In this document: positions 7,661 to 37,967 of the stretch, piece by piece
How positions within the stretch are numbered: position 1 is the stretch's first letter
Layout of the letters: every line of letters begins with the position of its first letter
Assembly: GCF_044704955.1 (NCBI RefSeq)
Contig: NC_091999.1
Span: 21,700,001-21,764,000, forward strand
Direction: 5' to 3'
Length of the DNA: 64,000 nucleotides
Origin: Pristiophorus japonicus
Taxonomy: Eukaryota
Program-made: the position numbers and the translations under genes
The notes under the pieces: model-generated
The model's database searches: none
The model's input: the letters and a program-made list of their open reading frames with translations, nothing else
What the model was told of the DNA's origin: nothing

Positions 7661-7772
7661 CATGAGAATATCAGAAATAGGAGATGAGTCGGCCCTTTGG
7701 CCCCTCGAGCCTGCCGCCATTCAATAAGATGATGGCTGCAGCATCTGGGGTGGTTCTCATTGGAGCAATGAA

Positions 7773-7930
7773 ACTCTTTTGAGTTTACCTGAAAAAAAAC
7801 ATCAACATTAAACCGTGCCACCCACCTGGGTGACACAGCAGACATTTTCAAGGCACCTTTTTTTTTTCCTTTTTATGTGTTTTTTTTTGTTTTTCTTTTT
7901 TTTTGGTTTTTTTTTGGGCGCTAAAATTCC
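7773..7930 (-). mobile_element. Short 5'-truncated Tx1 copy (3' UTR only), in tandem with the long copy
   Basis: Repeats the terminal 3' UTR of the adjacent element; flanked by a 13-bp direct repeat TTGGAGCAATGAA at 7760-7772 and 7931-7943. Confidence 0.85.
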
Positions 7931-8156
7931 TTGGAGCAATGAAAGTCTTTTTGAGTTTATCTGTGAACATAAAAAGGCATTAAACCGTGCCACCCGCCCT
8001 GGATGACACAGCAGACATTTACAAGGCCATTTTGTTTCTTTTTCTTGGTTTTTTTTTGGGGCGCAAAAATCAAATTTTTCCAGTGCCCCCTATAACAGGG
8101 GAGGGGGACACTAAAAGCACCGGCAATTAAAATAAATGAAACTTTAAAACGTAAAA

Positions 8157-11100
8157 TCAAATTAAAATTTGGTTGCCGGGCGTGATGATGCACTCCAGTC
8201 CCTCCGGTGCCCACCTCTCGCGGAAGGCCGCGAGCGTACCGGTGGACACCGCGTGCTCCATCTCCAAGGACACCCTGGACCGGATGTAAGAGCGGAAGAG
8301 AGGCAGGCAGTCAGGTTGAATGACCCCCTCGACCGCCCGCTGCCTGGACCGACTGATGGCACCTTTGGCCGTGCCCAGGAGCAGTCCTACGAGGAGGCCT
8401 TCGGACCTACACGCACCCCTCCACACAGGGTGCCCAAAGATCAGGAGAGTGGGACTGAAGTGCAGCCAGAATTTCAGGAGCAGCCCCTTCAAATAATGGA
8501 ACAGGGGCTGCAACCTTGTGCACTCAATAAAAACATGGAAAACGGACTCCTCCAGACCGCAGAAATTGCAGGCGGACTGGGAGTCCTTGAACCGGCTTAA
8601 AAATTTATTGCACGGCACTGCTCCATGCACCACCCTCCAGGCCAAGTCCCCGATGAATAATGGGAGGACGCCTGCGTAGAGTGCCCTCCATCGGGGACCC
8701 CCGCCTCCTCCGGATGGCAGGATGGTACGCCATGGCGTGTCCGGACGGCAGGTGAGGATGGCAAAGTTGAGACTGTGCAGGAGCAGCCCATACAGGAAAC
8801 CCCTCCGCGCGGAACTGAAAGGTACGGAGGGGATTTCCCCGAGGCGGCTCAAGTTGTGAGGCGCCGGACCCCGAGGGAGGTTCCGGGTTTTGGCGCCGAT
8901 GAGGAATTCCGTCCGGACGGGGGTCAGTTCGGACGGGATCTCCCCACGTGCTTGAGCCTCCTCGATGCACCTAACGGAGTCAGGGCCCAAAGCTGTTTAT
9001 AGCGACTCGATGGCTTCCGCCGCGTGGCGGACGTCGGCTGAATTTAGGCGCTGCGCCAGATTGTCTGGCGCCATCCAGCCCGCTCCTCCGCCATCGAGCA
9101 GGTCCCTGAACCTGGTCACCTCACCAGCCACAGCCCTCTCTTCCGACCGCCACATAAAACCTCGGTCGTGGAGGTACGGATTCCCGAGCAGCGGCTCCTG
9201 CAGGACGGCCGCCACTCCAGCCGGCGGAGAGCTGCGCTTGGTGGAGACTTTGTTCCAGGCACTGATGAGTTCCTTGTAAAAGACAGGCAGCTCCCGGAGG
9301 GCGGTCCTGGCACTCCCCAAGTTCACAAACAGGAGCTGCGTGTCATAATTGAGGTCGCGCTGCTGGCGGAAGAAATACGTCGCCAGAGCACACCACCTAG
9401 GAGGGGGCTCGACGTAAAGGTATCTCTGCAGGGTCTGAAGACGGAAAGTCGCGAGCTGGGCGCTGACGCACACCAACGACTAACCGCCCTCCTCAAGCGG
9501 GAGACTCAAGACTGCTGCAGAGATCCAGTGCTTCCTGTTGTTCCAGAAGAAGTCCACCAGCTTCTTCTGTATTTTGGCGACAAATGCAGGGGGAGGGGTC
9601 AAAGTGACCAGCCGGTACCACAACATTGCGGCCACCAGCTGGTTTATGACTAGCGCTCGACCCCTGTAGGACAGCACTCGGAGCAGTCCTGTCCAGCGCC
9701 CTAGTCGAGCGTCGACCTTGGCCTCCAGCTCCTGCCAGTTCGCCGGCCAGGCTCTCTCGTCGGGGCTAAGGTAAACTCCCAGATAGAGGAGATGGGTCGT
9801 GTTCCAGGCAAAAGGCCTGAGCTCCTCCGGCAGGGAGTCCACCCGCCACTGACCCACCAGGAGTCCGGAACATTTCTCCCAGTTGATTCTGGCGGAGGAT
9901 GTGGCCGAGTAAATCTCTTGGCACTCACGCATCCTCCGCAGGTCAGCGGGATCCTCTATCGCGAGGAGCACGTCATCGGCGTAAGCCGAGAGGACGACCC
10001 CCACACCCGGCCCTTGCAGAGCCAGTACTGTCAACCTCGATCGCAAGAGGCGCAGGAAAGGCTCCACGCAAACGGCGTATAACTGGCCGGACATTGGGCA
10101 TCCCTGGCGCACCCCTCTCCTAAAGCGAAGTGGCGCCATCAAGGATCCGTTAACCTTAATCAGACACTCCGCGGCGGCAGACAAAAGTCGGATCCGGGCG
10201 ACGAAATGCGTCCCGAACCCGAAAACGCACAGAGTTCCGAGCAGATAGTCATGATCCACCCTGCCGAACGCCTTCACTTGGTCGAGGGATAGGAAGGCGA
10301 CCGACAGACCAGCCTACTAGGAACAATGGATGAGGTCCCGGACCAGATGGATGTTATCGTGGATTGTCCGGCCCGCGTCCGTGTAGGACTGGTCGGGGTG
10401 GATCCTGTGGTCCAGCAGACATTGCCCTGGCGAAGATTTTGTAGTCCGTGCTGAGGAGGGAGACCGGGCGCCAGTTCTTAAGGAGGCGGAGATCGCCCTT
10501 CTTCGGCAGCAAGACGATGACTGCCCTGCGCCAAGAGAGGGGCATCTCCCCGGTCGCCAGACTTTCCCCCAGGACCCGCGCGTAGTCGCTCCCCAGGGCG
10601 TCCCAGAACGCCCTGTGGAACTCCACGGTCAGCCCGTCCAGCCCCGGGGATTTTCCCCTCGAGAGCCGGTCCAGGGCACCGGTCAGTTCCGCCAGGCTTA
10701 GCGGAGCTTCCAAATTTTCGGCGCCCTCCGGGCTGACCTTCGGCAGGTCCTCCCACAAAACTCTACGCGCTTCCTCGCTGGACGGATCCGGAGAGAACAG
10801 AGCCCCGTAATATTCACGGGCCCTGTTGTTGACGCCCTCCGGATCCGAGACGAGAGAGCCGTCGTTGGCCAGCAGCGTCAAGAGCTGCTTACGGACACTC
10901 TGCCTTTTATCCAGCGAGTAGAAGAAGGGGGAGCCATGGTCCAGATCCCGCAGGAACCGGATCCGCGACCTCACGAACGCGCCTCGGGACCCAACGAGTT
11001 GCAGGTCCTTCAGCGCGGCCTTCTTCGCTTCGTACACCGTCCGCAGGGCCGGGTCCTGGACGACTTGACCGAGACGGGCTTCCAGGTCGAGCACCTCTTT

Positions 11101-12038
11101 TTCTAGGCGCCCGACCCTGGCCGCCCGCCTCTTGGTCGAAATCCTCGCGTACCTTTGACAGCAGACGCGGACGTGAGCCTTGCCCACGTCCCACCACAGC
11201 CTCAAGGAGGGGAAGCCCCCCTGCTTCCTTCTCCAGTCGGAGCAGAATCGACGGAACGAGTCCTGGAACCGCACGTCCTCCAGCAGCCGGTTGTTAATGT
11301 GCCAGTACGCGGACCCCGTCCTCGCACGGAGCGAAGCGAGCTCCGCCCACATCAGGTGGTGGTCCGAACACGGCACCGGCCGCATGGAGGCCGCCGGGAC
11401 GCAGGAAACATACGCCCGAGACACGTAAAGGCGGTTGACTCTGGACCATCCTACTCCAGGCCTCACCCAAGTAAAGGCGCTGGAGTCGGGGTGGAGATTT
11501 CGCTACGTCCACCAAGTCGAAGGACCCGACCAGCTCCCTCAACTTCTCCATCGCTGTCATGCACTGCGGGGCACCGGAGCCGTTCCTCGCCTCGAGGGTG
11601 CAGTTAAAATCCCCCCCGAGGACAATGCAGTCGCCGACATCGACGGAGCCAAGAAGAGCGGACACCTCTTCAAAGAAGCACGTTGGCTGCGGGCCGGGCT
11701 GAGGGGCGTACATGTTCACGAGATGGAGCGGCACGTCCCCCAGGCGAACCGTTACGTGCAGCAAGCGGCCTGGCACGGGCTCCTTGACCCCCAAGATCTC
11801 CGGTTGAAAATGCGGGCCCAGCAAGATGGCCACCCCACTAGAAATGGCGGTGAGGTGGCTCATGCGGACCTCTCCTTGCCATTTCAGGAGCCACGTGGCT
11901 TCGTCTCCCGGAACGGTGTGGGATTCTTGCAGGAAGCACACCGCATATTTCCCCTCCCGCAGGAGCGAAAAATTGTCAAATCTATGGCGTGCCCCTCTGC
12001 CGCCGTTGATGTTGAGGCTGACTATGGTTATCTTCATG
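8157..12038 (-). pseudogene. Tx1 ORF2 (APE endonuclease-RT-C-terminal Cys domain), frameshifted
   Basis: SLNING, CFLQESH, LGGDFN, SDH; KSPGLDG, NWRPVSLLSTDYKI, GVRQGCPMS, SAYADDV, YLGV; CNFCGLEESVFHVFIEC; split across 5 ORFs. Confidence 0.92.
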
Positions 12039-12063
12039 GCAAAAGCATAGTGCAACCTCTACC

Positions 12064-14164
12064 TTAACCTATTGTGGGGGAGGCAGCGGAGTCTTTTGTT
12101 GAACTCCGCTCACTCCGCAGCCCAGTGAGGAGTCCCTCGAGCTCACGCTGCTCAAGGTGTTGCGCCTTTGTCAAGGGCCTGCCTGCGGCCAAGGTTTTAG
12201 TGGTGGCGCGGACGGACCCCTTGATCAGCTCTGGCTCGGACCATTTTTCCAGGGCCAGTCGGGCTTGGTTGCAGCGACCCCGGCTCTGGTCCAAAAATCC
12301 CGGAGTTCCTTTGCAGGAATGAGGATGGTCTTGGCGGCGGTCGCGAGCAGATCCTCCGCCTCGCTGGCGGTGGTCTCTAGATTTTACCTCCCGCGTCCCC
12401 CACCGAGTCCCCGTCCTCCTCCGGGAGGTGGCCGCCAGCAGCCGGCCCATCGACCGCACAAGGTATGGCAAATGACCCGGCCGCTCCAACCGGCCCTGGT
12501 TCTGCCCCGATCCCACCCCCAGGAACATCGACAGAGGAGTCCCCACTGGGCTCTTTTAAAAATGGTGCTGGGTCGGGAAACGACAGCGGAAGGGGCTTCC
12601 CCTCCGCCCCCGGAACCGGGGAACAAGGAAAGACCCGGCCATAGGAAATCCCCAGGCTCCCCAAGAGCTCCAGCTCCAAAGTAGGGGGCGAGGATGGGTG
12701 TTCCTCCCCCTCCCCGCTGCGAGCCCCCGGCCCAGCATCTACAGTGTCATTAAAATCATTCATTTCATTTTCTGCCGGGTCGAGCGACTCCCGGGGGAAG
12801 TTGGATATTGGCTGGGCGGGCTCAGGTTCGGCCTTTTCGGCCCCCCCCGCCTCAGTCCCCGGGACGCCCGGCCCAGCGGCAATGCTTTCCTCCGCGATCC
12901 CCACGCCCCCCACGACAGGCAGGTACTCCACGCCATCCCCGGGAGGCAGAGGCTGGGCAGCCTCGACTGTCTCACCCTCCCCAGGGACAGACTCCTCCCG
13001 CCTACGGCGCTGCTTGGGGGCGCTGGTGGTGGACGCGGGACACGCGGCGGGCAACGACTCCTCCGCGTAGGGATGTTGTTCCCCCTCCACCTCATCGGGG
13101 CGGCGCCTCCTTTTGTTGCTGGGGGTGCGCTGAGGCAGGGAGACCTCCATGTCTGCCGAGGCCTCCCGCTCCGCCCCCCCTTTTCCTTTTCTTGCCCTCG
13201 CCCGAGCCCCTCAGCGGTATTCGTCAAGGGCTCGGGCACGGGCTCAGGGCACACCGCGCTCGCCGGTGACTGGGTTGGGCTGAGCGCAGTGGTCAATCCT
13301 TCCGGCGCACTGAAGGGACCCGCCTCTAGATGTTTCACCTTGTTCCGCGCCTTCTTTCCGGTCGGACGCTCTACCTCCCCCCGCCGGAGGCCGTGAAAAC
13401 AAAGGCCCCCGACGATGCCCGTGCACCTATGGCTCCAGGCACGCGGACGCAACTAGGGGGAGGGGTGGCGGCGGCGCCAGCCTTGGCCGCCTTTGGTGGT
13501 TTGGCGGCCTTGGAGGTGGAGCAGTTCTTCCAAACATGCCCCACCTCCCTACAGGCATGGCACCACACGCCGTTCGACGTCCAGAAGATGCGGTAGGCAG
13601 TCCCCTCGTGCACCACATTAAAGTGCCCTTCCGTCGTGTCCTCCCGCGCCAACCGGACAAAGAGCTGGCGGCGGAAGGAGAACACGTGGCGCAGGCTGTT
13701 CTCTCTGAGGCCGAGCGGTATGGGGTTGATCCACGACCTTACCTCCCCCAGTTGGTGTAGATGAGGGAGGGGAGCTCAGCGGGAACAAAGGGCGGGACGT
13801 TTGACACGATGACCCTCTGCGCGGTGGCCTCGAGAGGGTCCACCGGCAGGAACGTCCCGCCCACCGTGAGCCCCTTTTCGATGGCCAGGGACACCACCCG
13901 CTCCGACCCCAGGAAGAACATGACCTTCCCAGACATCTTGGAGGCTGCGACAATGGCCGAGGGGCCGACTACCCCAGCCATCGCCCGCACGCACTCCTCG
14001 ATGGTCATTGTGGGGTGAGTGTAGCTCTTGACCCCGTGTTTTTTTGTGATGAGTTGAAAAGGTGGCAGGGCAGCAGGTGGCGCAAGAGGTGCCGTGGATG
14101 TGGACACTGCCTGCGCATATGTCCTCGCTGGCCCCGCCACCGGCGTGGATGGGGTCGCCATCAC
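12064..14164 (-). pseudogene. Tx1 ORF1 (gag-like nucleic-acid-binding protein), frameshifted
   Basis: RTYAQAV start, VIVSNVPPFVP motif, CHACREVGHVWKNC zinc knuckle, acidic low-complexity middle; ends just upstream of ORF2. Confidence 0.85.
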
Positions 14165-16524
14165 GGGGTCCCATTAAGGGCTACACCCACCCCATAATCA
14201 CAGGCCTCAAAGGTCTTAATTGGCCTCGTTTGATTAGACTGAGCAGAGGAGCTCTTAACGAGGCACACCTCTCCCCTAGTTGGCAATTGGGGAGGGGCCT
14301 TGCTCCCTCTGCTCAGTTCTCTTAATTTTTTTCTATTTTTAAATTGGGAGGAAGGGGTCTCAGAGAGAGAGGGGAGAAACAGAGAGTAACAGAGAAAGAG
14401 AGAGGGGGGTGGGAAGGGGGGGAACTGCGAGGGCAGGTCTCCCCTCGCAGCTGTGGGTGGGTGCAATCCCCAGATGGCAAAACACAAATAGTCTTTGGGT
14501 TGGTCTTCGGGTGAGGGGAGAAGATGTCTTCACCTGGGGCAGCTCGAGCCACCAGGCACACACTCCTAACGATGTTAAATGGGTGATTAAAGAAATGAAA
14601 TCTTCAGCCTGGTAGCTCCAGCTATCCCAGGCTAGGCAATTGGGGGGGGGGGGGGGGGTTCAATTGTGTGTGGGGCCTAGTTGTAGGCAAGTCCCCCACA
14701 CACACTTTCCACACACACACACCCCGCGCGATGTTCCGGCCCTTAGTGGTCTTCTTTCCTCCCCCCACCGATACAACAAAATCTATTTGGGAAATGCACC
14801 CACACCCACATGTAGAATGGTAGTCTCCCTCCTTCCACACTGGATGTTGTTGTTGATCTTTCCCCCTCTCTCCAACTCTTTGTAGAAAAGGTAAAGATGT
14901 TAAACGCTTTCTGCCTTCCTCCTCTCCCTCTGGGTGAAAGTTGGTGGTGAAGCCCCTTCCTTCCTTCACACTGCCACACACAGATACCGTTTCCTTGTTT
15001 CACATCTCAATACAAGGACCATCTCTTCACACATCCCCTTTATGCACAATTGCAGCAGACATGAGCAAGGACGTGAGGCTTATTAAAAGACACATTTCAT
15101 TACAGCAAAGGTTACACTGGGAGAAATGTTCAGTTATTTTCCATTACAGCAAAAATGCCAGACAAACCAGCAGCATACTAGCACCTGAACAGTGTCTCAT
15201 TAGCCTACAGGCTTTCCTTAAATAGATTTGCTGCGTGGAAATAAACTTAAACCAGCTTTGCGGGCATGATGCTCTATTCACACATTGAAGGTGAGATAGA
15301 TGCTGTGGGGCACACACTAAGTCAAGCAGCTGAAAGTGATTTACAGACTGGGTTTTGTGTTTAATGATCCCGGGCGTGTTACCAATGCCGGCAAAGATGA
15401 AGCCCATGGAATAAAAGGGACAGTGGATACTGTCTCACTGTGAGCGTGTCAGAATGAGAAGCTTTAACAACAACCCATGTTTCACAAAGGGAGACCTCAC
15501 CAGACGAAAGGACATTGGGCGTTTAATGGGATGTTTGTGTCACTGGGCTACAGGAGGCTACTTGTGACAGAAGGAAAGCTGGACACAGCAAACGAACAGT
15601 TTAATGGCCTGCCCAGGGCCCACTCTGACCCCCACCTTCTCTCTCTCACTATTGATGGACACTGCTGCAGTAATTGCTCCTCTAACCTTTGCTCTCTTGT
15701 CCCTCCCACACCCCTAACCCGAAACAATCTCCCTCCTCCTACATCCTCACTGTGCTGGAATCCACACCAGTCTCCCGATCTGCTCCTTCTTCTCTCCCTG
15801 GATCCTGAAACTACAGAACTCACTGATCTCCAGGCTCTAAAACTGAAGCTTGGTGGCCCTCAGTCCCTACTCCTTGATTTACCTCCGCTTCTCTCCTCCT
15901 CTTTCCCCCTTGGTTGTGTTCCACACTCTGGGCCTTGGACCTTCCCCGGGGATTCTCAGTATGAACAGGGGGATGTGTGTTGAAACAGGATGTTACTGCT
16001 CTCCTCCTTTAAAGGGAAATGGAGAGGATCAGTTGGGCTGATGGCCCTGCTTTATGACATCACCGCAGTGCCTAACAACCAACCTCCCTGAGCCCTGATC
16101 ATTTTGGGCTGGGTTGAGCTCAGTGCTGTTACAGGAAGGGAAACAGGAGCAGGAATTGACCCGTGTGAAGCCCAGGATTAACGGGGAGAGGTACAGGATC
16201 AATTTATACCTTATTGAGTGCGAAATGTCATTGTCCCAGACACTCCTTGTCCCTCAGTATCTGTGTCGGGGAGCGACCGATGGGTTCACTCTGTATCTAA
16301 CCCGCGCTGTGCACGACTGGAGAGTGTTTGATGCTGGCACGAGGTGCACAGCTTAATGAGCATAACATTTAATCCAAAGATGATCAGATAAACCCATGAG
16401 CTTCACCTCTGGACACAGGTCCTGAAGGACAGGGAGTGTCTCTAATAATTTGGCTGGTATCCTTGATCAAATTTAAACACCTCGCATCTCTTTTTCAAAA
16501 TTCGTTCATGGGATGTGGGCGTCG

Positions 16525-17490
16525 TCTCTCATCTCGCATTCTTCTGTACGAGAGCGAATATAGGTCTCGTCTACTCAATCTCTCATAGGACAATCCCCCC
16601 ATCCCAGAAATCAGTCTGGCGAACCTTCATTGCACTCCCTCTATAGCAAGTTTATCTTTCCTTACATAAGGAGACCAAAACTGTACACAATACGCCAGGT
16701 GTGGCCTCACCGGAGTCCTTTATAATTGCAGTAAGATGTATTTACTCTTATACTCAAATCTTTTTGTAATAAAGGCCAATATACCATTTGCTTTCTTAAT
16801 TGCTTGCATGTAAACTTTTAGCGTTTTGTATACAAGAACACCCAGGTCCCTCTGATCACCAACATTTCCCAATCACTCACCATTTAAAATAAATACTCTG
16901 CCTTTCTATTTCTACTCTCAGTTTATAACTTAACATTTCTTCACATTATATTCCATTTACCATGTTCTTGCCCACTCACTGAGCCTGTATATATCCCCTT
17001 GAAACCTCTTTTCATCCTCCTCACAACTTATATTCCCAACTAGCTTTGTAGCCTCAGCAAACTTCGATATATTACATTTGGTCCCCTCATCCAAATTATC
17101 GATATAGTTTGTGAATTGCTGGGGCCCAAGCACCGATCCTTGCAGCACCCCACCAGTTACAGCCTGCCAACCCGAAAATCGCCCGTTTATTCCTACTCTC
17201 TGTTTTCTGACCGTTATCCAATCCTTGTTCATATATTACCTCTAATCTCACGAGCGATAATTTTGTTTAATAATCCCTTGTGTGGCACCTCATTGAATGC
17301 CTTTTGTAAATCTAAATAAATCACATCAAGTGGTTCGCCCTTTTCTATCCTGCGAGTGACAACCTCAAGAAATACTAACAGATTTGTCAAGTACAATTTC
17401 CCTCTTATAAATCCGTGTTCATTCTGCCCAATCGTGTTATTACTTACTACGTGCTTAATAATATATTTTAGCATTTTCACTACTACTGAT
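16525..17490 (-). mobile_element. Old CR1 RT fragment
   Basis: YLDLQKAFNEVPH, VLQGSVLGP and SKFAEATKL degenerate RT motifs. Confidence 0.85.
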
Positions 17491-17499
17491 ATCAGAACT

Positions 17500-18548
17500 A
17501 TCAGTATTGCACGGGTTAGATACAGAGTAAATCTCACTCCATCCTGTCCCAAACACTATCAGGGTTGATACAGAGTAAATCTTAGACTACAATATCCCAA
17601 ATACTCCCAGGGCAGGTGCAACATGTTTTAGATACAGAGTAAAGCTCCCTCTACACTTTGCCATTAACCAGTCCCAGGGCAGGTGCAGTACAGGTTAGAC
17701 ATGGAGTATCTTTTCCTCAACCCTGCCACAAAACATTCTCAGGGCAGGTACAGCACGGGTTAGATACAGAGTAATGCTGCCTCTGCACTGTCCCATGAAA
17801 CACTCCCAGGGCAGCTACAGCACATGATTAGATGCAGAGTAAAGCTCCCTCTACACTGTCCCATCAAACACTCCCAGTGCAGATACAGCACGTGGTTAGA
17901 TACAGAGTAAAGCTCCATCTACACTGCCCCATCAAACACTCCCAGGATAGGTACAGCACAGGTTACACGGAGTACATCTTCTTCTACCCTGATCCAGCAA
18001 TTCCGTTGCAAATACAGCATTTGTTTCATATTAAGTAAATCTCCCTCTACACTGTTCGATCAACCACTCCCACAGCAGGTACTGCATTGGTTATACACTA
18101 AGTAAAGCTCCCTCTACACTGTCGAAATAAACACTCCTAGGACAGCTACAGCACAATGTAGATACAGTGTAATTCTCTCTCTAATCTTTCTAGAATTCTG
18201 CACAGTTTTGGTCGCCTTAGCTAAAGAAGGATATATTTGCCTTGCTTAGAAACAGAGTAAAGCTCCCTCAACACTCTCCCACCATACATTGCAAGGGCAG
18301 GTACAAAGCAGGTTAGAGACAGAGTATATCTTCCTCAACCCTACCCCAAGCATTCCAGAGCAGATACTGCATTGGTTAGATACAGATTAAAGCTCCTTCT
18401 ACACTGTCCCATCAAACACTCCCAGGGCAGGTACAGCACGGATGAGATACAGAGTAAAGCTCCCTCTATACTGTCGCATCAAAGACTCCCACAGCAAGTA
18501 CAGCACGGGTAGATATGGAGTAAACCCCGCCCTAGACTGTCCCGTCCA
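17500..18548 (+). repeat. 67-bp satellite, about 15 degenerate units
   Basis: Repeated gttagatacagagtaaagctccctctacactgtcccatcaaacactcccagggcaggtacagcacg. Confidence 0.92.
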
Positions 18549-18611
18549 ATGTTATTGAATGGGGAGCAGGCTCCGGGGGCCGGGTGGCCCCCTCCTGCTC
18601 ATATTTCTTAT

Positions 18612-19005: not shown

Positions 19006-19172
19006 GTCTGGAACTGAACCCAGCAAGAGCAAGCAACTTCAGGGGAGGGGAAACAGTGAGTGCAGAACTGAACCCAGCCACAGTCAACACATTCAGGGGA
19101 GGGGAACCAGTGAGTGTAGAACTGAACCCAGCCAGAGTCAGCACCTGCAGGGGAGGGGAAACAGTGAGTGTA

Positions 19173-21413: not shown

Positions 21414-21771
21414 TGAGTGTAGAACTGAACCCAGCCAGAGTCAGCACCTTTAGGAGAAGGAAGTGTACCTGTGAGTGTCGAACTGAATCCAGCCAGTGTC
21501 AGCACATGCTGGGAAGGGGAAGGAGGGGAACCAGTGAGTGTAAACCTGAACCCAACCAAAATTGGTAGTGAAAACTGGGAGCGGAGGAGAAACTGTCTCG
21601 AAATTTGTGTTGATTTGGATTTCAGCACAGCAGGTGGGCCAACGTGTGGGACAGGGATTTATAGCTTTGGAAGGACAAGGGAGATAAGCATGTTCAATGG
21701 AAACTAGATGAGTCTATCCTGAATTTCGGTCCTGTACTGACAGCGATGAGTTTTGTTGTCCCCTTTTACAG

Positions 21772-22554
<783 letters not shown>

Positions 22555-23035: not shown

Positions 23036-24665
23036 CCAAAACTGTGTGTAGTACTCCAGGTGTGGTCTTACCAACGCCCTGTACAGTTGTAGCAGGACTT
23101 CCCTACTTTTATATTCCACCCCCCTTGCAATAAAGGCCAGCATACCATTTGCTTTCCTGATTATTGCTCTACCTGCATGCTAACGTTTTGCATTTCATGT
23201 ACAAGAACCCCCAGATCCCTCCGTACTACAGCATTTTGTAATCGTCCCCATTTAAAGAATAATTTGCTTTTTTATTTGTACTACCAAAGGGGATAAGCTG
23301 AAATTTTAACACATTACAGTCCATCTGTCAGATTTTGCCAACTCACTGATCCTGGCTATATCCTTTCGTAGATTATTTGCGTCCTCCTCACAGCTTGCTT
23401 TCCCAACTATCTTTGTATCATCAGCAAATTTGATTATGTTACACTCGGTCCCTTCATCCAAGTTATTAATATAAATTGTAAATAGTTGAGGCCCCAGCAC
23501 TGATCCCTGTGGCACTCCACTAGTTACAGTTTGCCAACCTGAAAATGATCCATTTATCCCGACTCTCTGTTTTCTGTTAGTTTGCCAATCCTCTATCCAC
23601 GGTGATACATTACCGCCAACCCCATGAGCTCTTAGCTTGTGCAGTAGCCTTTTGTGCAGCACCATATGGAATGCTTTCTGGAAATCCAAATATACAACAT
23701 CAACTGATCTCCTTTATTCACTCCGCTCGTTACATCCTCAAACAACTCCAGGAAATTTGTCAACATGATTTCTCTGTCATAAAACCATGCTGACTCTGCT
23801 TGACTGCAATATGATTTTCTAAATGTCCTGCTACTTATCCTTAATGATAGACTCCAGTATTGTCCCACTGACAGATGGTAGGCTAACTGGTCTATAGGTT
23901 CCTGCTCTCTGTCTCACTCTTTTCTTAATTAGGGGTGTTACATTTGCGGTATTCCTGTCGATTGGGGACTCGCCAGAATTTAGGGAATTTTGTTAGATTA
24001 CAACCGATGCACCGACTATCTCTGCAGCCACTTTTTTCAAACCCTAGAATGCTTGTCATCAAGTCCAGGGGACTTGTCCGTCTTTAGACCCATTAGTTTG
24101 ATTAGTACTTGATCTCTCGTGATAGTGATTGCTCCCCCGCTCCCCCGCCCCCCCGCAATAGCTCCTTGGTTATTAACTATTAGGAAGTTTTTAGGTGCCC
24201 TCTACCGTGAAGACCGATTCAAAATTATTCTTTTAAAGTCTCTGCCATTTCCATGTTTCCTATTATTAATTCTCCAATTTCATCTTCTAAGGGACCAACG
24301 TTTTCTTCAGCTGCTCGTTTCCGTTTTATATCCCTGTGGAAGCTCTTATTTACTGTTTCCATATTCCTTGCTAACTTGCTCTCATCTGCTATCTTCACTG
24401 TCTTCATCATTTTTTTCGTCGTCCTTTGCTGCTTTCTTAAAATTTCCCAATCCTCAGGCTTTCCACTGTCGTTCGCAACATTGTATGCCTTTTTTCAATT
24501 TGATACCATCCTTTACTTCCTTAGTTAGGGTGGGATGGTTCATCCTTCTCTTACCATCTTAATTTCTCACTTGAATAAATCTTTGCTGAGAGTTATGAAA
24601 TATCTCCTTAAATGTTTGCCATTGCATTTCTACAGTCCTACCCTCTAACATATTTTCCCAGTCCA
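23036..24665 (-). mobile_element. Degenerate CR1 ORF2 fragment
   Basis: DFQKAF, SGVPQGSVLGP and KFADDTK motifs; same subfamily as 1166-4265. Confidence 0.9.
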
Positions 24666-27660: not shown

Positions 27661-27730
27661 TTATGTATATATATATATATATGTATATGTGAATGTATAT
27701 ATGCATGTATGTATATATGTGTGTGTGTCT
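27661..27730. repeat. (TA/TG)n microsatellite
   Basis: Directly visible. Confidence 0.9.
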
Positions 27731-27785
27731 ACAAAGCACATCATTCTTAATATTTGCTAATCAATTGCACAGAGATAAATTATTA

Positions 27786-27930
27786 CACGCACAGGCATCT
27801 TCCACCCTTCAACATGTAGTTCAGGATCCGGAATATTAGGACCTTCATTGAAACACCTGTGAACTCATCCCTTTTCGGGGTGGAAGCAAGTCATCCTCGT
27901 TTCGAGGGACCGCCTATGAAGACGATGATA
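27786..27930 (+). mobile_element. 5'-truncated copy of the RTE-tailed non-autonomous element
   Basis: Matches 38412-38547; ends gtggaagcaagtcatcctcg...gcctatga(..gat)n. Confidence 0.8.
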
Positions 27931-28489
27931 ATGGTGCAAGATTACCAAGAGGCTTGTTTAAAATGGAAATAACTTCAAGGTGTTACCGACCTTGAACTTT
28001 GCTGGAACAAAAGAGAAGAACTCCAGTAATGTCCAGCTTCTTATATGCAGCAATGAATCTTGAATGCCACAGCATGGTAACAAAATTGAACTTAAGACTT
28101 TAAAAACAAATGCTTGGAATGAATGATTTGGAGTCATGTGTTATCTTCTACGACAGACTGCTCGAGGGGGAAGATAACAGACTTGCTGTAAACGCATTGC
28201 AGATAGCTTTTGTATTGTTAAATCACAAAGGCTGGACACAGGTTTTTGTGAAAATAAAATTGATGAGCTAAATAGATAGGAGCTCCTGCTCAAGCATTCG
28301 GGACAGGAAATCTAATTCAGATAAGCTAAGTTTGACCTATGGAGGGAAGACCTCTCACAGAGCGGTGATGTTTTTCCTTTGTTTCTTTTTCTTGCAGAAG
28401 CAAGTGGAAGCGAGGGCGCAGGATGCAATATCGCAACCAGCAAGGGCCAGGTGAACGAGGGAAGGTGTGTGTGCCTAGAATGCTGGGGA

Positions 28490-28915
28490 AGCATCGCTGA
28501 CCTACATAATTCCCGGTTAAGCAATGCCTCGATTTCAAAATGTTCATGCTTGTTATCAGATCCCTGCAAGGCCTCGCTCCTCCCTATCTCTGTAATCTCC
28601 TCCACAGCCCCACAACCCCTGAGATATCTGCTCTCCTCTAATGCTGCCTTCTTGAGCAGCCCTGATGATCATCGCCCAACCTTCTGTTGCCTTGGCCCCA
28701 AGCTCTAAAACTCGTTCCCTAAACCTCTCTGCCTCTCATTCTTCCTTTAAGATGCTCCTTAAAACCCATATCTTTGACCAAGCTTTTGATCACCTGTCCT
28801 AATATCTGCTTATGTGGCTTGTGTCAAGTTTTTTGTCTTATAATACTCTGTAAAATTCCTTGGGACGTTTTACACATTAAAGGCATTATATAAATACAAG
28901 TTTTGTTTTTGTTGT
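28490..28915 (+). mobile_element. L2-clade LINE 3' end
   Basis: Homologous to 6600-6820; ends ctttgaccaagcttt...aaaggcattatataaatacaag(ttg)n. Confidence 0.7.
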
Positions 28916-29549
28916 TGCTGATACCCTTGATTTGACCTTTCACGGTATTTTATAGAACGTGCAGCTCAGAAACAAGCCATTTGGCCGAACTGGTCCACGT
29001 CGGGGTTTAAATGCCACACGACCCTCCTCTCAAACTATCAACATACCCTCCTACTCCCCTACATTGAGCAGTTCCACATTCACTGGTTGCCTTCCAGTGC
29101 CTATCCAAAGGGCCAATGTGTGAGGGTATGCAGTGATTGTTGGCAGCCTATTCAACCTTTGGGGCATCATAGTCCCTTTGCAGACTTGGCCTTTGCTGCT
29201 GTGGTGAGTGTACAGTGACCAGTGGAAGGAGCCCAGGGCGGTGAGGTTAACTGCAGTCTGCCCACCAGCAGCCCATCCTGGGTCAGCTGACAACCCCCAC
29301 AGTGAGCAGCTGGAATGTGCAACCTCTCCTGGTCTGCACTGGGGAGCAAGGGAGGTCAAGGGTCAGCACAGAATTTCATCAACGTTGACCTCCAGCCTCT
29401 CTACCTCAGGAGAATCAAGTTGCAACAACGTCATGTTGTCATCACTTTCCAGCGCGCGTCACACTCGGCCCCCACTGTTCCGGCGATCTCAGTCCCCATT
29501 GGGTGGAAGCTCCTGTCAATCAGGTCGTGGGTTCTGGTCACATGCCCAA

Positions 29550-29975
29550 AGGCTGGAGGCGGAGAGAAGATTCCGGAACGGGGAAGCGTCGGGCAGCTCA
29601 GGGGAGCCCTGGACCTGGCCGGGGGTGGGTCTTTCTAAACACCCGAGTTAGGCCTCAGGCCCCAAGCAGGAACATGCAGCTCCGGCGTTTGCCCAGAGCT
29701 CGAGTGTGTCAGATGCTTCACGGAGGCGGTCGGAGATTGTAGGGGCGGGGAAGGATGTGTATCCGCGTGTGGGCCGGGGAGCCTCACACACATCCGTTGT
29801 TGGCCTCAGGCCCCAATCACAGCCCACAGGCCCCGGGTATGCGCGGCTGTGACAGGCCCGGCTCAGCGGGGTCACTGGCCGCCGTCTTGCACAGGGCGGG
29901 GTCACAGTGCATGCGCGACCACCTTGCCCAGGAACAATAAGTTGGCGGGGCTTCAAGGTCCCAGTGCCCGCGAGA
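29550..29975. promoter_or_regulatory. CpG-island-like promoter candidate
   Basis: GC boxes GGGGCGGGG (~29742) and GGGCGGGG (~29894), YY1-like GCCGCCGTCTTG (~29878), NRF1-like TGCATGCGC (~29908). Confidence 0.5.
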
Positions 29976-29979
29976 TGGA

Positions 29980-30422
29980 GCAACCTGGGCATCAGGCTCT
30001 TCATCACCTCGCAACAATAACCAAGGCAACAGGCTCTTCATCCCCTCACAACAATAACCTAGGCAACAGGCTCTTCACCCCTCACAACAATAACCTAGGC
30101 AACAGGCTCTTCATCCCCTCACAACAGTAACCTAGGCAACAGGCTCTTCATCTCCTCACAACAATAACCTAGTCAACAGGCTCTTCATCCCCTCACAACA
30201 GTAACCTAGGCAACAGGCTCTTCATCCCCTCACAACAATGATCTAGGCAACAGGCTCTTCATCCGGTCACAACAATAACCTAGGCAACAGGCTCTTCATC
30301 CCCTCACCACAATGACCTAGGCAACAGGCTCTTCATCCCCGCACAACAGTAACCTGGGCAAGAGGCTCTTCATCACCTCACAACAGTAACCTGGGCAACA
30401 AGCGAGTCATAACCTCACAACA
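29980..30422 (+). repeat. 37-bp minisatellite, about 12 units, each containing an RFX X-box-like motif
   Basis: Unit ACAACA(A/G)TAACCTAGGCAACAGGCTCTTCATCCCCTC. Confidence 0.95.
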
Positions 30423-31513
30423 CCATCCTGTTCAACAGTTACAACATTAGCCTCTAATTATATAGTGCCTTCTACGTAGAAAATCGTCCAAGGGCACTTC
30501 ATAGGGACGTTATTGGAGAATAATTTGATACCGAAGCGTAGAAATATAGAAAGTAGGTGCGGGAGTAGGCCATTCGCCTCTTTGAGCCTGCAGCTCCATT
30601 CAATATGATCATGGCTGATCATGCAACTTCAGTACCCCATTCCTGCATTCTCTCCATATTTCTTGATCCCTTTAGCCATAAGGACCACATCTAACTCCAT
30701 TTTCAATATGTCCAACGAATCGGATTCAAAACTTTCTGTGGGAGACAATTCCACACGTTCACAACTCTCTGGGTGAAAAAGGTTCTTCTCATCTCAGAGG
30801 AACAAAAGAACATAAGAATTAGGAATAGGAGTAGGCCATCTAGCCCCTCGAGCCTGCTCCGCCATTCAACAAGATCATGGCTGATCTGGCCGTGGACTCA
30901 GCTCCACTTACCCGCTCGCTCCCAGTAACCCTTAATTCCCTTATTGGTTAAAGATCTATCTATCTGTGATTTGAATACATTCAATGAGCTAGCCTCAACT
31001 GCTTCCTTGGGCAGAGAACTCCACAGATTCACAATACTCTGGGAGAAGAAATTCCCTCTCAACTCAGTTTTAAATTGTCTCCCCCGTATTTTGATGCTGT
31101 GCCCCTAGTTCTAGTCTCCCCGAACAGTGGAAACAACCTCTCTGCCTCTATCTTGTCTATCCCTTTCATTGTCTTTAATGTTTCTATAAGATCACACCTC
31201 ATCCTTCGGAACTGCAACGAGTACAGACCCAGTCTACTCAATCTATAATCATAGGGTAACCCCCTCATCTCCGGAATCAGCCGAGTGAATCGTCTCTTTA
31301 CCCCCTCCAAAGGTAGTATATCCTTCCTTAAGTAAGGTGACCAAAACTGCTCGCAGTACTCCAGGTGAAGCCTCACCAATACCCTACACAGTGTGAGCAG
31401 GACCTCCCTGCTTTTGTACTTCATCCCTCTCGCAATGAAGGCCAACATTACATTCGCCTTCCTGATTACCTGCAGCACCTGCAAACTAACATTTTTTGGG
31501 GATTCATGCACAA

Positions 31514-34500
31514 TGAGAGGGAGGGGTGTTCAACAAAAGACTCCGCTCCCTCTCCCACAATAGGTTAAGGTAGAGGTTGCACTATGCTTTTGCCATGAAG
31601 ATACCCATAGCCAAACTCAACATCAACGGCAGCAGAGAGGCACGCCATAGATTTGACAATTTTTCGTTCCTGCGGGAGGGGAAATATGCGGTGTGCTTCC
31701 TGCAAGAAACCCACACCGTTCCGGGAGACGAAGCCATGTGGCTCCTGGAATGGCAAGGAGAGGTCCGCATGAGCCACCTCACCGCCATTTCTAGTGGGGT
31801 GGCCATCTTGCTGGGCCCGCATTTTCAGCCGGAGATCTTGGAGGTCGAGGAGCCCGTGCCAGGCCGCTTGCTGCACGTAACGGTTCGCCTGGGGGACGTG
31901 CCGCTCCATCTCGTGAGCATGTACGCCCCTCAGCCCGGCCCGCAGCAAACGCGCTTCTTTGAAGAGGTGTCCGCTCTTCTTGGCTCCGTCGACGTCGGCG
32001 ACTGCATTGTCCTCGGGCGGGATTTTAACTGCACCCTCGAGGCGAGGGACCGCTCCGGTGCCCCGCAGTGCATGACGGCGATGGAGAAGTTGAGGGACCT
32101 GGTCGGGTCCTTCGATTGGTGGACGTCTGACGAAATCTCCACCCAGACTCCAGCGCCTTTACTTGGGTGAGGCCTGGAGTAGGATGGTCCAGAGTCGACC
32201 GCCTTTACGTGTCTTGGGCGTACGTTTCCTGCATCCCGGCGGCCTCCATGCGGCCGGTGCCGTGTTCGGACCACCACCTGGTGTGGGCGGAGCTCGCTTC
32301 GCTCCGCGCGAGGACGGGGTCTGCGTACTGGCACTTTAACAACCGGCTGCTGGAGGACGTGCGGTTCCAGGACTCGTTCCGTCGATTCTGGTCCGACTGG
32401 AGAAAGAAGCAGGGGGGCTTCCCCTCCTTGAGGCGATGGTGGGACGTGGGCAAGGCTCACGTCCGCGTCTTCTGTCAGGATACGCGAGGGGGTCGACCAA
32501 GAGGCGGGCGGCCAGGGTCGGGCGCCTAGAAAAAGAGGTGCTCGACCTGGAATCCCGTCTCGGTCAAGTCGTCCAGGACCCGGCCCTGCGGACGGTGTAC
32601 GAAGTGAAGAAGGCCGCGCTGAAGGACCTGCAGCTCGTCGGGTCCCGAGGCGCGTTCGTGAGATCGCGGATCCGGTTCCTGCGGGATCTGGACCGCGGCT
32701 CCCCCTTCTTCTACTCGCTGGAAAAAAGGCAGAGTGTCCGTAAGCAGCTCTTGACGCTGCTGGCCGACGACGGCTCTCTCATCTCGGATCCGGAGGGCGT
32801 CAACAACAGGGCCCGTGAATATTACGGGGCTCTGTTCTCTCCGGATCCGTCCAGCGAGGAAGTGCGTAGAGTTTTGTGGGAGGACCTGCCGAAGGTCAGC
32901 CCGGAGGGCGCCGAAAATCTGGAAGCTCCGCTAAACCTGGCGGAGCTGACCGACGCCCTCGACCGGCTCACGAGGGGAAAATCCCCGGGGCTGGACGGGC
33001 TGACCGTGGAGTTCCACAGGGCGTTCTGGGACGTCCTGGGGAGCGACTACGCGCGGGTCCTGGGGGAAAGTCTGGCGACCGGGGAGATGCCCCTCTCTTG
33101 GCGCAGGGCAGTCATCGTCCTGCTGCCTAAGAAGGGCGATCTCCGCCTCCTTAAGAACTGGCGCCCGGTCTCCCTCCTCAGCACGGACTACAAAATCTTC
33201 GCCAGGGCGATGTCTGCTCGCCTTGGTGCCGTGCTGGACCACATGATCCACCCCGACCAGTCCTACACGGTCCCGGGCCAGACAATCCACGATAACATCC
33301 ATCTGGTCCGAGACCTCATCCATTGTTCCCAGGAGGCTGGTCTGTCGGTCGCCTTCCCATCACTCGACCAAGAGAAGGCGTTCGACAGGGTGGATCACGA
33401 CTATCTGCTCGGAACGCTGCGCGCTTTCGGGTTCGGGACGCATTTTGTACACCGCCGCGGAGTGTCTGATTAAGGTTAACGGGTCCTTGACGGCGCCCCT
33501 TCGCTTTAGGAGAGGGGTGCGCCAGGGATGCCCCATGTCCGGCCAGTTATACGCCGTTTGCGTGGAGACTTTCCTGCGCCTCTTGTGGACGAGGTTGACG
33601 GGACTGGCTCTGCAAGGGCCGGGTGTGGAGGTCGTCCTCTCGGCTTACGCCGATGACGAGCTCCTCGCGGTAGAGGATCCTGCTGACCAGCGGAGGATGC
33701 GTGAGTGCCAGGAGATTTACTCGGCCCCGTCCTCCGCCAGGATCAACTGGGGGAAATGTTCCGGACTCCTGGTGGGTCAGTGGCGGGTGGACCCCCTGCC
33801 GGAGGAGCTCAGGCCTTCTGCCTGGAGCACGACCCATCTCCTCTATCTGGGAGTCTACCTTAGCCCCGACGAGGGAGCCTGGCCGGCGAACTGGCAGGAG
33901 CTGGAGGCCAAGGTCGCCGCTCGCCTAGGGCGCTGGACAGGACTGCTCCGAGTGCTGTCCTACAGGGGTCGAGCGCTAGTCATAAACCAGCTGGTGGCCG
34001 CAATGTTGTGGTACCGGCTGGTCACTTTGACCCATCCCCCTGCGTTTGTCGCCAAGATACAGAAGAAGCTGGTGGACTTCTTCTGGAACAACAGGGAGCA
34101 CTGGGTCTCTGCCGCGGTCTTGAGTCTCCCGCTTGAGGAGGGCGGTCAGTCGTTGGTGTGCGTCAGCGCCCAGCTCGCGACTTTCCGTCTTCAGACCCTG
34201 CAGAGATACCTTTACATCGAGCTCCCTCCTAGGTGGTGTGCTCTGGCGACGTATTTCTTCCGCCAGCAGCGCGACCTCAATTATGACACGCAGCTCCTGT
34301 TTGTGAACTTGGGGGGTGTCAGGACGGCCCTCCGGGAGCTGCCTGTCTTTTACAAGGAACTCATCAGGGTCTGGAACAAAGTCTCCACCAAGCGCAGCTC
34401 TCCGCCGGCTGCAGTGGCGGCCGTCCTGCAGGAGCCGCTGCTCGGGAATCCGTACCTCCACGACCGAGGTTTTATGTGGCGGTCGGAAGAGAGGGCTGTG

Positions 34501-35716
34501 GCTGGTGAGGTGACCAGGGTCAGGGACCTGCTCGATGGAGGAGGAGCGGGCTGGATGGCGCCAGACACGCTGGCGCGGCGCCTAAATTCTGCCAACGTCC
34601 GCCACGCGGCCGATGCCATCGAGTCGCTAAAAACAGCTCTGGGCCCTGACTCCGTTAGGTGCATCGAGGAGGCTCAAGCACGTGGGGAGATCCCGTCCGA
34701 ACTGACCCCCGTCTGGACGGAATTCCTCATTGGCGCCAAACCCCGGAACCTCCCTCGGGGGCCGGCGCCTCACAACTTGAGCCAACTCGAGGAAATCCCC
34801 TCCGTGCCTTTCAGTTCCGCGCGGAGGGGTTTCCTGTACGGGATGCTCCTGCACACTCTCAACTTTGCCATCCTCGCCTGCCGTCCGGACACGCCATGGC
34901 ATACCATCCTGCCGTCCGGAGGAGGCGGGGGTCCCCGATGGAGGGCACTCTACGCAGGGGTCCTCCCACTATTCAACGGGGAGTTGGCCTGGAGGGTGGT
35001 GCACGGAGCAGTGCACAGCAATAAATTTTTAAGCCAGTTCACGGACTCCCAGGCCGCCTGCAATTTCTGCGGTCTGGAGGAGTCCGTGTTCCATGTTTTT
35101 ATTGAATGCACGAGGTTGCAGCCCCTGTTCCATTATTTGAAGGGGCTGCTCCTGAAATTCTGGCTGCACTTCAGTCCCACTCTCCTGATCTTTCGGCACC
35201 CTGTGCGGAGGGGAGCGGGTAGGTCTGAAGGCCTCCTCTTAGGACTGCTCCTGGGCGCGGCCAAGGGTGCCATCAGCCGGTCCAGGCAGCGGGCGGTCGA
35301 GGGGGTCGTTCAACCTGACTGCCTGCCTCTCTTCCGCTCTTACATCCGGTCCAGGGTGTCCTTGGAGATGGAGCACGCGGTGTCCAACGGTACGCTCGCA
35401 GCCTTCCGTGAGAGTTGGGCACAGGAGGGACTGGAGTGCATCATCAAGCCCGGCAACCAAATTTTAATTTGATTTTACGTTTTAAAGTTTAATTTGATTT
35501 AATTGCCGGTGCTTTTAGTGTCCCCCTTCCCTTTTATAGGGGGCACTGGGGAAAAATTGTGATTTTAGTGCCAAAAAAAAAACCAAAAGAAGAAAAACAC
35601 AGAAAGAAAAAAAAAAAGGAGAAAAAAAAAAGGGCCTTGTAAATGTCTGGTGTGTCACCCAGGTCGGGTGGCACGGTTTAATGTTTTTTGTTTTGCAGAT
35701 AAGCTCCAAAAAGAGT
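31514..35716 (+). mobile_element. Tx1-clade retrotransposon, 5'-truncated at the end of ORF1, with 11-bp TSD
   Basis: TTCATGCACAA at 31503-31513 and 35717-35727; close homolog of 7944-12100. Confidence 0.95.
31595..35472 (+). pseudogene. Tx1 ORF2 (APE-RT), three frameshifts
   Basis: ORFs of 197, 120, 345 and 675 aa; CFLQETH, DQEKAFDRV, GVRQGCP, YADD, CNFCG...C. Confidence 0.93.
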
Positions 35717-37967
35717 TTCATGCACAAGGACCCACAGGTCCCTCTGCACCGCAGCATGTTGTAATTTCTCCCCATTCAAATAATATTCCCTTTTACTGTT
35801 TTTTTTTCCAAGGTGGATTACTTCACATTTTCCAGCTTACCCATTATCCTTAGACTGTGCCCCCTGCTTCTGGACTTCCCCAACATCGGGAACATTCTTC
35901 CTAAATCTAACCTGTCCAGTCCAGTCAGATTTTTATATGTTTCTATGAGATCCCCTCTCATTCTTCTAAATTTCAGTGAGTATAAGCCGAGCCGATCCAG
36001 TCTTTCCTCTTATGTCAGTCCTGCCATCCCGGGAATCAGTCTGGTGGACCTTTTCTGCACTCCGTCAATAGCAAAAACGTTTTTCCTCAGATTAGGAGAC
36101 CAACACTGCACACAATAGTCAAGATATGGTCTCACCAAGTCCCTGTACAACTGCAGTAAGACCCCACTGCTCCAATATTCAAATCCCCTCGCTATGAAGG
36201 CCAGCATACCATTTGCTTTCTTTACTGCCTGCTGTACCTGCATGCCTACCTTCAATGACGGATGAACAATGACACCCAGGTCTTTTTACACCTACCCTTT
36301 TACTGATCTGTCACCATTCAGATAATAATCTGCCTTCCTGTTTTTGCTACCAAAGTGGATAGCCTTAAATGTATCCCCATTATACTTCATCTGACATGCA
36401 TTTGCCCATTCACCGAACCTGCCCCAGTCCCCTGCAGCCTCATAGCTTCCTCCTCGCAGCTCGCACTGCCACCCAGCTTAGTGTCATCTGCAAACTTGGA
36501 GATATTACATTCAATTCCTTCGTCTAAATCATTAATGTATATTGTAAATAGCTGGGGTACCATCACTGAACCCTGTGACACCCCACTAGTCACTGCTTAC
36601 AATTTTAAAAATGACTCGTTTATTCCCACTCTTTGCTTCCTGTCTGCCAACCAGTTCTCTTTCCACGTCAATGCATTACCCCCAATACCATATGCCTTAA
36701 TTTTGGACACTAATCTCTTGTGTGTGACTTTGTCAAAAGCCTCTTGAAAGTCCAAATACATTACATCCACTGGTTCTCCCTTGTCCACTCTGCGAGTTAC
36801 ATCTTCAAAAAACTCTAGAAGATTTGTCAAGCATGATTTCCCTTTCATAAATCCATGCTGACTTGGATTCATCCTGTCACTGCTTTCCAAATGCGCTGCT
36901 ATTACATCTTTAATAATTGATTCCAGCATTGTCCCCACCAACGATGTCAGGCTAACCGATCTATAATTCCCTGTTTTCTCGCTCCTTCCTTTTTTAAAAA
37001 ATGAGGTTACATTAGCTACCCTCCAATCCATAGGAACTGAACCAGAGTCAATGGAATATCGGAAAATGACCACCAATACATCAACATTTTCTAGGGCCAC
37101 TTCCTTAAGTACTCTGGGATGCAGATTATCAGGCCATGTGGATTTGTCGGCCTTCAGTCCCTTCAATTTCCCTAACACCATTTCCTGACTATTAAGGATT
37201 TCCCTCAGTTCCCCCTTCTCGCTAGACCCTCGGTTCCCTAGTATTTTCGTGAGGTTTTTCGTGTCTTCCTTTGTACAGACAAAACCAAAGTATGTGTTCA
37301 GTTCGTCTGCCATTTCCTTTTTCCACATTATGAAATCACTTGATTCTGTCTTCACTAATCTTTTTCTCTTCACTAATCTACAGAAGCTTTTACAGTCAGT
37401 TTTTATGTTCTCTGCAAGCTTACTCTCATACTCTATTTCACCCCTCCTAATTAAACCCTTGGTCCTCCTCTGCTGAATTCTAAATTTCTCCCAGTCATCA
37501 GGTTTGCTGTTTTTTCTGGCCAATTTAGATGCATCTTCCTTGGATTTAACCCTATCCTTAATGTCCCTTGCTAGCCACGGTAGAGCCACCTTCGCTGTTT
37601 TATTTTTACTCCAGACAGGGATGTACAATTGTTTAAGTTCATCTATGTGATATTTAAATGTCTGCCATTGCCTATCCACCGTCAACCCTTTAAGTATAAT
37701 TTTCCAGTCTATCCCAGCAAGTTCACGTCTCATACCGTCGAAGTTTCCTTTCATTAAGTTCAGGATCCTAGCCTCTGAATTAACTGTGTCACTCTCCATC
37801 TTAATAAAGATTTCTACCATATTATGGTCACTCTTCCCCAAGGGGCCCGTCACGACCAGATTGCTAATTAATCCTCTCTCGCTACACATCACCCAGTCTA
37901 GGATGGCCTGCTCTCCAGTGGGTTCCTCGACATGTTGGTCTAGAAAACCATCCCTTATACACTCCAG

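Follow-up and report, generated by a model that had tools for sequence, protein, structure and literature searches.

A Tx1-Like LINE Without a Poly(A) Tail and Its Probable Target in the Reverse Transcriptase Region of CR1

Introduction

The DNA considered here is a 64,000-nucleotide stretch of the Pristiophorus japonicus genome (contig NC_091999.1, positions 21,700,001 to 21,764,000), which is called the window throughout; all coordinates are window positions. It contains three copies, designated A, B, and C, of a Tx1-like long interspersed nuclear element (LINE) that encodes an APE endonuclease and a reverse transcriptase (RT) and that lacks a poly(A) tail. Copy A lies in the RT region of a CR1 LINE, while B and C are stacked at a single nucleotide near 7.8 kb. 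At all three 3' junctions the element is followed by TTCAT. The original prediction, made from the sequence of this stretch, took this as a short-motif specificity whose target could not be matched to any described for Tx1 elements. The junctions that it described all prove to be accurate in detail. The analysis below does not bear out a short motif as the whole target, and suggests that TTCAT is the beginning of a longer target within CR1.

Copies of the Family in the Window

A blastn comparison of copy A with the window gives five matches in all: copy A itself (31511-35717); copy B on the minus strand (12115-8035, with 94.2% identity over 4103 aligned columns); the tail of B (8037-7943, 85.6% over 97); fragment C (7927-7772, 84.0% over 162); and a distant 179-base stretch (41033-41209). 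A search with the conserved 18-mer of the tail, in which up to 3 mismatches were allowed, returns 3 matches, all of them exact, against 0.06 expected, so that the window has exactly three 3' ends of the family. The copies and two of their features are as follows.

31514 to 35716, plus strand: copy A, 5'-truncated, beginning about 80 bases ahead of the ATG of open reading frame 2 (ORF2) at 31596
7944 to 14164, minus strand: copy B, carrying ORF1 and ORF2, with its 3' end at 7944 and extending to at least 14164
around 13560 to 13520, minus strand: zinc knuckle (CX2CX4HX4C) in ORF1 of B
7773 to 7930, minus strand: fragment C, 158 bp, 5'-truncated and consisting of 3' untranslated region (UTR) only; a separate insertion
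35650 to 35678, plus strand: 12-bp hairpin in the 3' UTR, about 40 bases ahead of the 3' end, common to A, B, and C

Copy B is near full-length and copy A is 5'-truncated, since B runs past the start of A into ORF1. Position 14164 is the start of ORF1 in B, and the true 5' end of B lies further upstream, with a candidate near 14594 or beyond. All open reading frames are broken in A and B alike, and ORF2 of A is split into at least four pieces. An ORF1 piece of B reads ..WCHACREVGHVWKNC.., which is a CX2CX4HX4C zinc knuckle; an ORF1 with a nucleic-acid-binding zinc knuckle is a feature of the Tx1 clade. Two further observations concern the region in or just upstream of the 5' UTR of B, namely a run of C at 14641-14657 (minus strand) and short internal repeats (..CCCCAATTGCC..) within 14270-14690. 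These repeats may be 5' UTR monomers of the family.

The 3' UTR of copy A spans 35473-35716. In agreement with the original prediction, terminal poly(A) is absent from the 3' ends of A, B, and C, and all three junctions read ...AAAAGA(G/C)T followed by TTCAT. The tails end in ...AAAAGAGT or ...AAAAGACT, with the target directly after, and an A-rich tract is internal to the 3' UTR, about 85 bases short of the end. Neither the terminal poly(A) nor the A/T-rich nick site of poly(A)-dependent L1-type LINEs is present in the family. The hairpin is conserved among the three copies, a number too small for a real covariation test.

Classification of the Family

Pfam searches of the protein pieces returned Exo_endo_phos, RVT_1, and zf-RVT, which gives ORF2 a layout of N-terminal APE endonuclease, RT, and C-terminal zinc-binding region. 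The RVT_1 match scores 64.1 bits and the zf-RVT match 28.0 bits in B, while the Exo_endo_phos match (E-value 1.4e-4), at 22.1 bits, is under the curated cut-off of 24.5 bits. The two ORF1 pieces of B matched no Pfam family. The best named relative of the 675-amino acid ORF2 piece of A is an alligator protein annotated as "transposon TX1 uncharacterized 149 kDa protein" (37% identity, 97% coverage). Among solved structures the nearest is human L1 ORF2p (E = 2.4e-13), whose match covers residues 9-237 of the piece, the RT core only. A search for homologous proteins with the same piece found 34 at E <= 1e-30, the best of them (P0001) 64% identical, so no further copy of the family is among these 34 proteins. 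According to these protein hits and features, rather than a tree, the family is best placed as a Tx1-like APE/RT LINE without a poly(A) tail, and the family assignment of the original prediction holds to that extent.

A second and more distant Tx1-like ORF2 fragment is found at 41035-41271 (plus strand), with 57% amino acid identity to residues 535-613 of the 675-amino acid piece. It ends at about 41330, where a CR1 copy cuts it, and its junction is uninformative. Matches to a 17-mer of the tail were also noted in metagenome (44), viral (2), and prokaryote (30) contigs; these were rejected as chance, as none of the 76 loci gave a blastn match to copy A.

Copy A and the CR1 Site

Copy A is inserted in the RT region of CR1, antisense to CR1. 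Its two target site duplications (TSDs) and the empty counterparts of the site in the window are listed here.

31503 to 31513, plus strand: 5' TSD copy of A, TTCATGCACAA, 11 bp, directly ahead of the first base of the element at 31514
35717 to 35727, plus strand: 3' TSD copy of A, TTCATGCACAA, in which TTCAT occupies 35717 to 35721
52619 to 52629, minus strand: empty canonical target, TTCATGCACAA, in an intact CR1 paralog
3568 to 3578, minus strand: empty canonical target in another CR1 copy, with ..TTTTTGTGT upstream, then TTCATGCACAAG
23194 to 23204, plus strand: empty near-canonical target, TTCATGTACAA, in a third CR1 copy, which reads ...GTTTTGCAT then TTCATGTACAAGA

Copy A ends in ...CTCCAAAAAGAGT at 35716, and TTCATGCACAA adjoins it at 35717-35727. 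The intact CR1 paralog at 52615-52632 reads, in reverse complement, TGGGATTCATGCACAAGG; that is, ...CTAACTTTTTGGGA is followed without interruption by TTCATGCACAAGG. On the sense strand of CR1 the target codes for ..DLGVLVHESQK.., just past the RVT_1 match in the ORF. Judged from these copies, the TTCAT at the CR1 site belongs to the target, because the empty intact paralog holds it and two more CR1 copies hold it as well. The original prediction had drawn the same conclusion from the paralog, and the two additional copies agree with it. In all, the window has 9 CR1-like copies with the homologous region, of which 4 have TTCAT there, and 1 of these 4 is occupied.

A sequence one mismatch away from the canonical 11-mer, TTTATGCACAA, lies at 15039-15049 (plus strand), about 450 bases past the presumed 5' end of B and on the opposite strand. 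It is probably due to chance, with 1.45 such matches expected per window.

The Double Landing at 7.8 kb

The second place of insertion is occupied by the 3' ends of B and C, and comprises the following features.

7931 to 7943, minus strand: 5' copy of the duplication of C, TTCATTGCTCCAA, between the 3' end of B and the 5' end of C
7760 to 7772, minus strand: 3' copy of the duplication of C, TTCATTGCTCCAA
7653 to 7738, minus strand: short CR1 3'-tail fragment, sense on this strand and 22 bases downstream from the 7.8-kb place

Read on the minus strand, the 3' terminus of B is ...CTCAAAAAGACT, with its last base at 7944, and TTCATTGCTCCAA comes next (7943-7931); C terminates in ...CTCAAAAGAGT at 7773, and TTCATTGCTCCAA again comes next (7772-7760). 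Tandem copies thus sandwich the TSD, in the order B-TSD-C-TSD at 7760-7943. The claimed duplications are therefore present at both places, TTCATGCACAA at copy A and TTCATTGCTCCAA at 7.8 kb, and at both of these independent places the duplication begins with TTCAT, as had been predicted. The chance that a second independent site repeats the five letters of the first is about 1/1024.

C sits behind B at the same nucleotide, and the 13-bp TTCATTGCTCCAA on its two sides is perfect (13/13 identical). Compared with the tail of B, C shows 81% identity with 32 gap columns; compared with A, it shows 83% identity with 5 gap columns. A duplication identical at 13/13 bases beside an element that differs from the tail of B indicates two landings at one nucleotide, and on this sequence evidence C is a landing separate from B. 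The alternative is that B-TSD-C-TSD arose by local duplication, through unequal exchange or replication slippage, of the tail of B with 13 flanking bases. The head-to-tail order of the two units and the 13-mer that they have in common would fit such an event, but a C that is so far diverged from B next to perfectly preserved 13-mers, and nearer to A than to B, would not. C also begins at a truncation point with extra letters, like 5'-truncated LINE copies. Furthermore, in a study of crocodilian Tx1 families, tandem Tx1 copies that sandwich a TSD are read as sequential insertions, and so is the same architecture in Tx1-mobilized short interspersed elements (SINEs) (PMC4494074). Local duplication is accordingly considered very improbable.

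The duplication that B itself would have produced is harder to find. Near the 5' side of B there is no copy of the 13-mer, and the candidate is a TTCATT of 6-7 bases at 14601-14596 (minus strand). This candidate may be internal to B, because the stretch upstream of it resembles the 5' UTR of B (score 16, reached by 6/300 shuffles).

The 7.8-kb place was also considered as a disguised CR1 RT site and rejected as such, since the adjacent CR1 is a 3' tail in sense orientation and no CR1 is found upstream of B, where nothing CR1-like was seen. Tails like that at 7653-7738 are present in many copies in the window, and in intact CR1 copies the tail is found on the 3' side of the RT site, at a distance of about 620-700 bases. 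Other repeats occur in the window. Tandem-repeat blocks at 17560-18550, 43900-44590, and 6820-7210 are one sequence (73-85% identical mutually, in many registers), one of the three blocks being some 550 bases away from the Tx1 stack at 7.8 kb. Arrays of a 54-bp minisatellite are found at 4300-5021, 19011-19172, 21414-21558, and 43257-43661, each adjoining CR1-tail-like sequence.

The Family in Public Contigs

Public contigs (not reads) were aligned to the 601-base stretch 35300-35900 of the window, which holds the 3' end of copy A and its CR1 flank. Sets X1 and X2 come from one sample of organism A, the source organism, whereas X5 comes from organism B and X9 from organism C. The stretch is covered by 43,524 contigs of X1, 26,737 of X2, 13 of X5, and 5 of X9. 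By identity to copy A, the X1 contigs divide into 5248 at >=99%, 14074 at 95-99%, 17852 at 90-95%, and 6350 at <90%.

Contigs whose loose ends lie "before" 35715 number 105 in X1 and 114 in X2, and 63 contigs of X1 have theirs "before" 35717. These are empty CR1 sites of two subfamilies, which read ..TTTTTGT+GT and ..TTTTTGGGA; both subfamilies are found in X5 and one in X9. Many contigs also break off at 35833-35838 (loose ends "behind" 35833 and "before" 35835 and 35838), which marks a repeat-family boundary in the CR1 flank of A.

Among the 12 of 22 joint rows that are listed, 8 run from 35718-35730 back into the element. Each of these 8 is a 5'-truncated copy directly behind the junction of another copy, that is, a stack. 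In 6 of the 8 the kept part runs to 35728-35730, which places the CR1 target between the stacked copies. Another listed stacked row keeps TTCA (35720) and continues with CR1-like letters.

In the two other organisms the family is nearly absent. X5 has one element contig of 381 bases, which covers 35300-35514 with 7 differences in 215 bases, and X9 has no depth on the element part of 35300-35900. All three organisms thus have the empty CR1 site, but the family itself is very abundant in organism A, is scarce in B, and was not seen in C. The many contigs in organism A against almost none in the other two, despite their empty CR1 sites, suggest a recent, lineage-specific burst of the family.

Specificity of Insertion

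TTCAT occurs 148 times on the two strands of the window, but only two of these places hold copies. One belongs to the set of 4 canonical CR1 sites; among the remaining 144 TTCAT one place is occupied, twice over. If landing were even over all TTCAT sites, the observed pattern would have a probability of about 5e-4 (3 x 4/148 x 1/148, a post hoc calculation). Since so few of the 148 sites are used, and these are a CR1 site and a place hit twice, TTCAT alone cannot be the specificity.

The preferred reading, to which a probability of roughly two in three is assigned, is that the family is a sequence-specific LINE of the L1/Tx1 type whose main site is a fixed RT-coding stretch of CR1, entered antisense to CR1, that TTCAT is the first five letters of this longer target, and that the 7.8-kb place is an off-target. 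Most likely, the CR1 site itself is the target for which the original prediction had no match. A mechanism can be proposed from the sequences at the junctions. The APE endonuclease would nick the bottom strand between ...TTTTTG(G/T)G(A/T) and TTCATGCACAAGG, and the freed ...GCATGAA-3' end would prime reverse transcription at the terminus of an RNA without poly(A), which is probably recognized through its structured 3' UTR. A second nick would follow 11-14 bases further, and hence the duplication would always start with TTCAT. These five letters would open the longer target and also form the core at which nicking or annealing takes place, read either by the protein or through RNA pairing. The 7.8-kb place would be a rare off-target with TTCAT and little else in common with the CR1 site. 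There, the end of the first copy (...AAAGAGT) together with TTCAT would mimic the natural site of one CR1 subfamily (...TTTGTGT followed by TTCAT), and a second copy could then land at the same nucleotide, which would give the stack of element, TSD, element, and TSD. This proposed re-creation of the site is based on G at -2 and -4 and T at -1, which the tails of A and C have in common with one CR1 subfamily. Nick, priming, RNA recognition, second nick, and site re-creation are thus all putative steps.

Several points weigh against this reading. CR1 as the main target is represented by one case in the window and a few of the listed contig rows. The downstream flank at 7.8 kb weakly resembles that of the CR1 target (local score 11, reached by 23/2000 shuffles), and it ties for 7th-8th of the 148 TTCAT sites, after the four true CR1 sites. 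The place may thus be not wholly unrelated to the CR1 target; the original prediction had called it unrelated. The putative re-creation of the site is suggested by 3 of 4 matching bases. One listed joint row (35718 to 35300) keeps only TT of TTCAT after the tail. Finally, among 21 rows listed, with 790 more in existence, there is no loose end "behind" 35716-35727, which proves little.

The specificity proposed originally, in which a short motif, TTCAT at one nick and perhaps CAA at the other, allows landing wherever it occurs and CR1 is hit because it is abundant and carries the motif, accounts for the shared TTCAT, for a 7.8-kb place that is not a CR1 RT site, and for the CAA at the end of both window TSDs. 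The last agreement does not extend to the contig stacks, in which 6 listed rows end at 35728, 35729, or 35730 and not after the CAA at 35727, and these stacks are on the CR1 target. Together with two occupied places in 148, one of them a canonical CR1 site and the other hit twice, this makes a short motif quite unlikely as the sole determinant. Somewhat less improbable, though still unlikely, is that TTCAT is copied from the RNA of the element. In that case the RNA would end in ...GAGTTTCAT, perhaps fixed after read-through into the CR1 target, the nick would lie after TTCAT, the duplications would be GCACAA and TGCTCCAA, and the target would need no TTCAT except by microhomology. Every junction is compatible with this, a nick before or after TTCAT would suit the empty CR1 site GGGATTCATGCACAAGG, and at 7.8 kb the TTCAT ahead of C follows the end of B and is not assignable to the target. 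Read-through and annealing are moreover described for other site-specific LINEs, as cited in PMC4494074. However, TTCAT just before the nick in CR1 would then be a coincidence (1/1024), unless it serves for annealing, which merges this explanation with the preferred one. The contig row from 35718 to 35300, in which the tail and TT are followed by other letters, also speaks against it, as does the absence of TGCTCCAA from the sequence inspected upstream of B.

A more radical version, which is tentative and rather unlikely, places the specificity in a pairing of five bases. The nicked ...ATGAA-3' would pair with UUCAU at the RNA terminus or in its read-through, the endonuclease would add no more than loose context, and in every copy the element's own tail plus TTCAT would form a new landing pad. 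If this were true, head-to-tail arrays could start wherever a first stray landing falls, beyond CR1, and with the stack at 7.8 kb the seed of such an array would be documented outside CR1 for the first time.

Site-specific LINEs are natural cases of RNA-templated insertion at a chosen DNA address. Under the CR1-targeting reading, a Tx1 element appears to take the coding sequence of another LINE as its address, and the selection and amplification of CR1 itself would keep the target spot conserved and plentiful. Unlike the copies within CR1, the stray landing, an off-target place hit twice, points to TTCAT at the nick as the indispensable core of the target, and hints that the element's own end can replace the upstream half.

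Comparison with Known Systems

Targets described for Tx1 elements include U2, U5, 5S, satellites, microsatellites, Mariner, Harbinger, and long terminal repeat (LTR) elements (Kojima, 2015; PMC4494074). In that study, a target preference is accepted when >20% of flanks are of one kind, which needs more than the 2 places in hand here, and co-transcription of element and target is described as reinforcing specificity (PMC4494074). Tx1L of Xenopus laevis, which lands in the DNA transposon Tx1D, is likewise a LINE with APE and RT aimed at one site in another transposon (PMC1950540; PMC4494074), and its endonuclease is a sequence-specific nickase that cuts almost only at its own target (PMC1950540). 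The target of Tx1L is a DNA transposon, whereas that of the present family is the coding region of the CR1 LINE; the two are set apart by description and not by sequence.

The crocodilian Tx1-Mar, Tx1-9_AMi, Tx1-8_Crp, Tx1-4_AMi, and SINEU-3 also occupy fixed places in Mariner, Harbinger, or LTR elements and form tandems that sandwich a TSD (PMC4494074). For these families the portion of the study available names no LINE target, and SINEU has a poly(A) tail, unlike the family described here (PMC4494074). Keno (U2 small nuclear RNA), Kibi ((TC)n), and Koshi ((TTC)n) are target-specific elements of the Tx1 clade as well, according to the same source (PMC4494074), but their targets are RNA genes or microsatellites, and neither place here is one. 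At the two junction places, the CR1 RT region and the spot beside a CR1 tail fragment, there is no small nuclear RNA, microsatellite, or DNA transposon, and the landing places of the family do not match the named targets of Keno (U2), Kibi ((TC)n), Koshi ((TTC)n), Tx1-Mar (Mariner), or Tx1L (Tx1D).

Elements of the R1/R2 type in ribosomal DNA likewise join their target precisely and without a tail, at a site conserved in a multicopy sequence. In R1/R2 read-through RNA anneals to the target, whereas for the family here annealing is a conjecture; R1/R2 also belong to other clades, and the R2 endonuclease is of another type. Human L1 has the ORF2 fold family in common with the present family, but it nicks at TTTT/AA and depends on poly(A), while the present family lacks poly(A) and a T-rich nick site and lands at a fixed site. 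In the literature searched, which did not extend to Repbase and Dfam, no Tx1 element aimed at CR1, at any LINE, or at TTCAT was found. Site-specific insertion is an established habit of Tx1 elements, and a site in the RT-coding region of a LINE is new among its targets.

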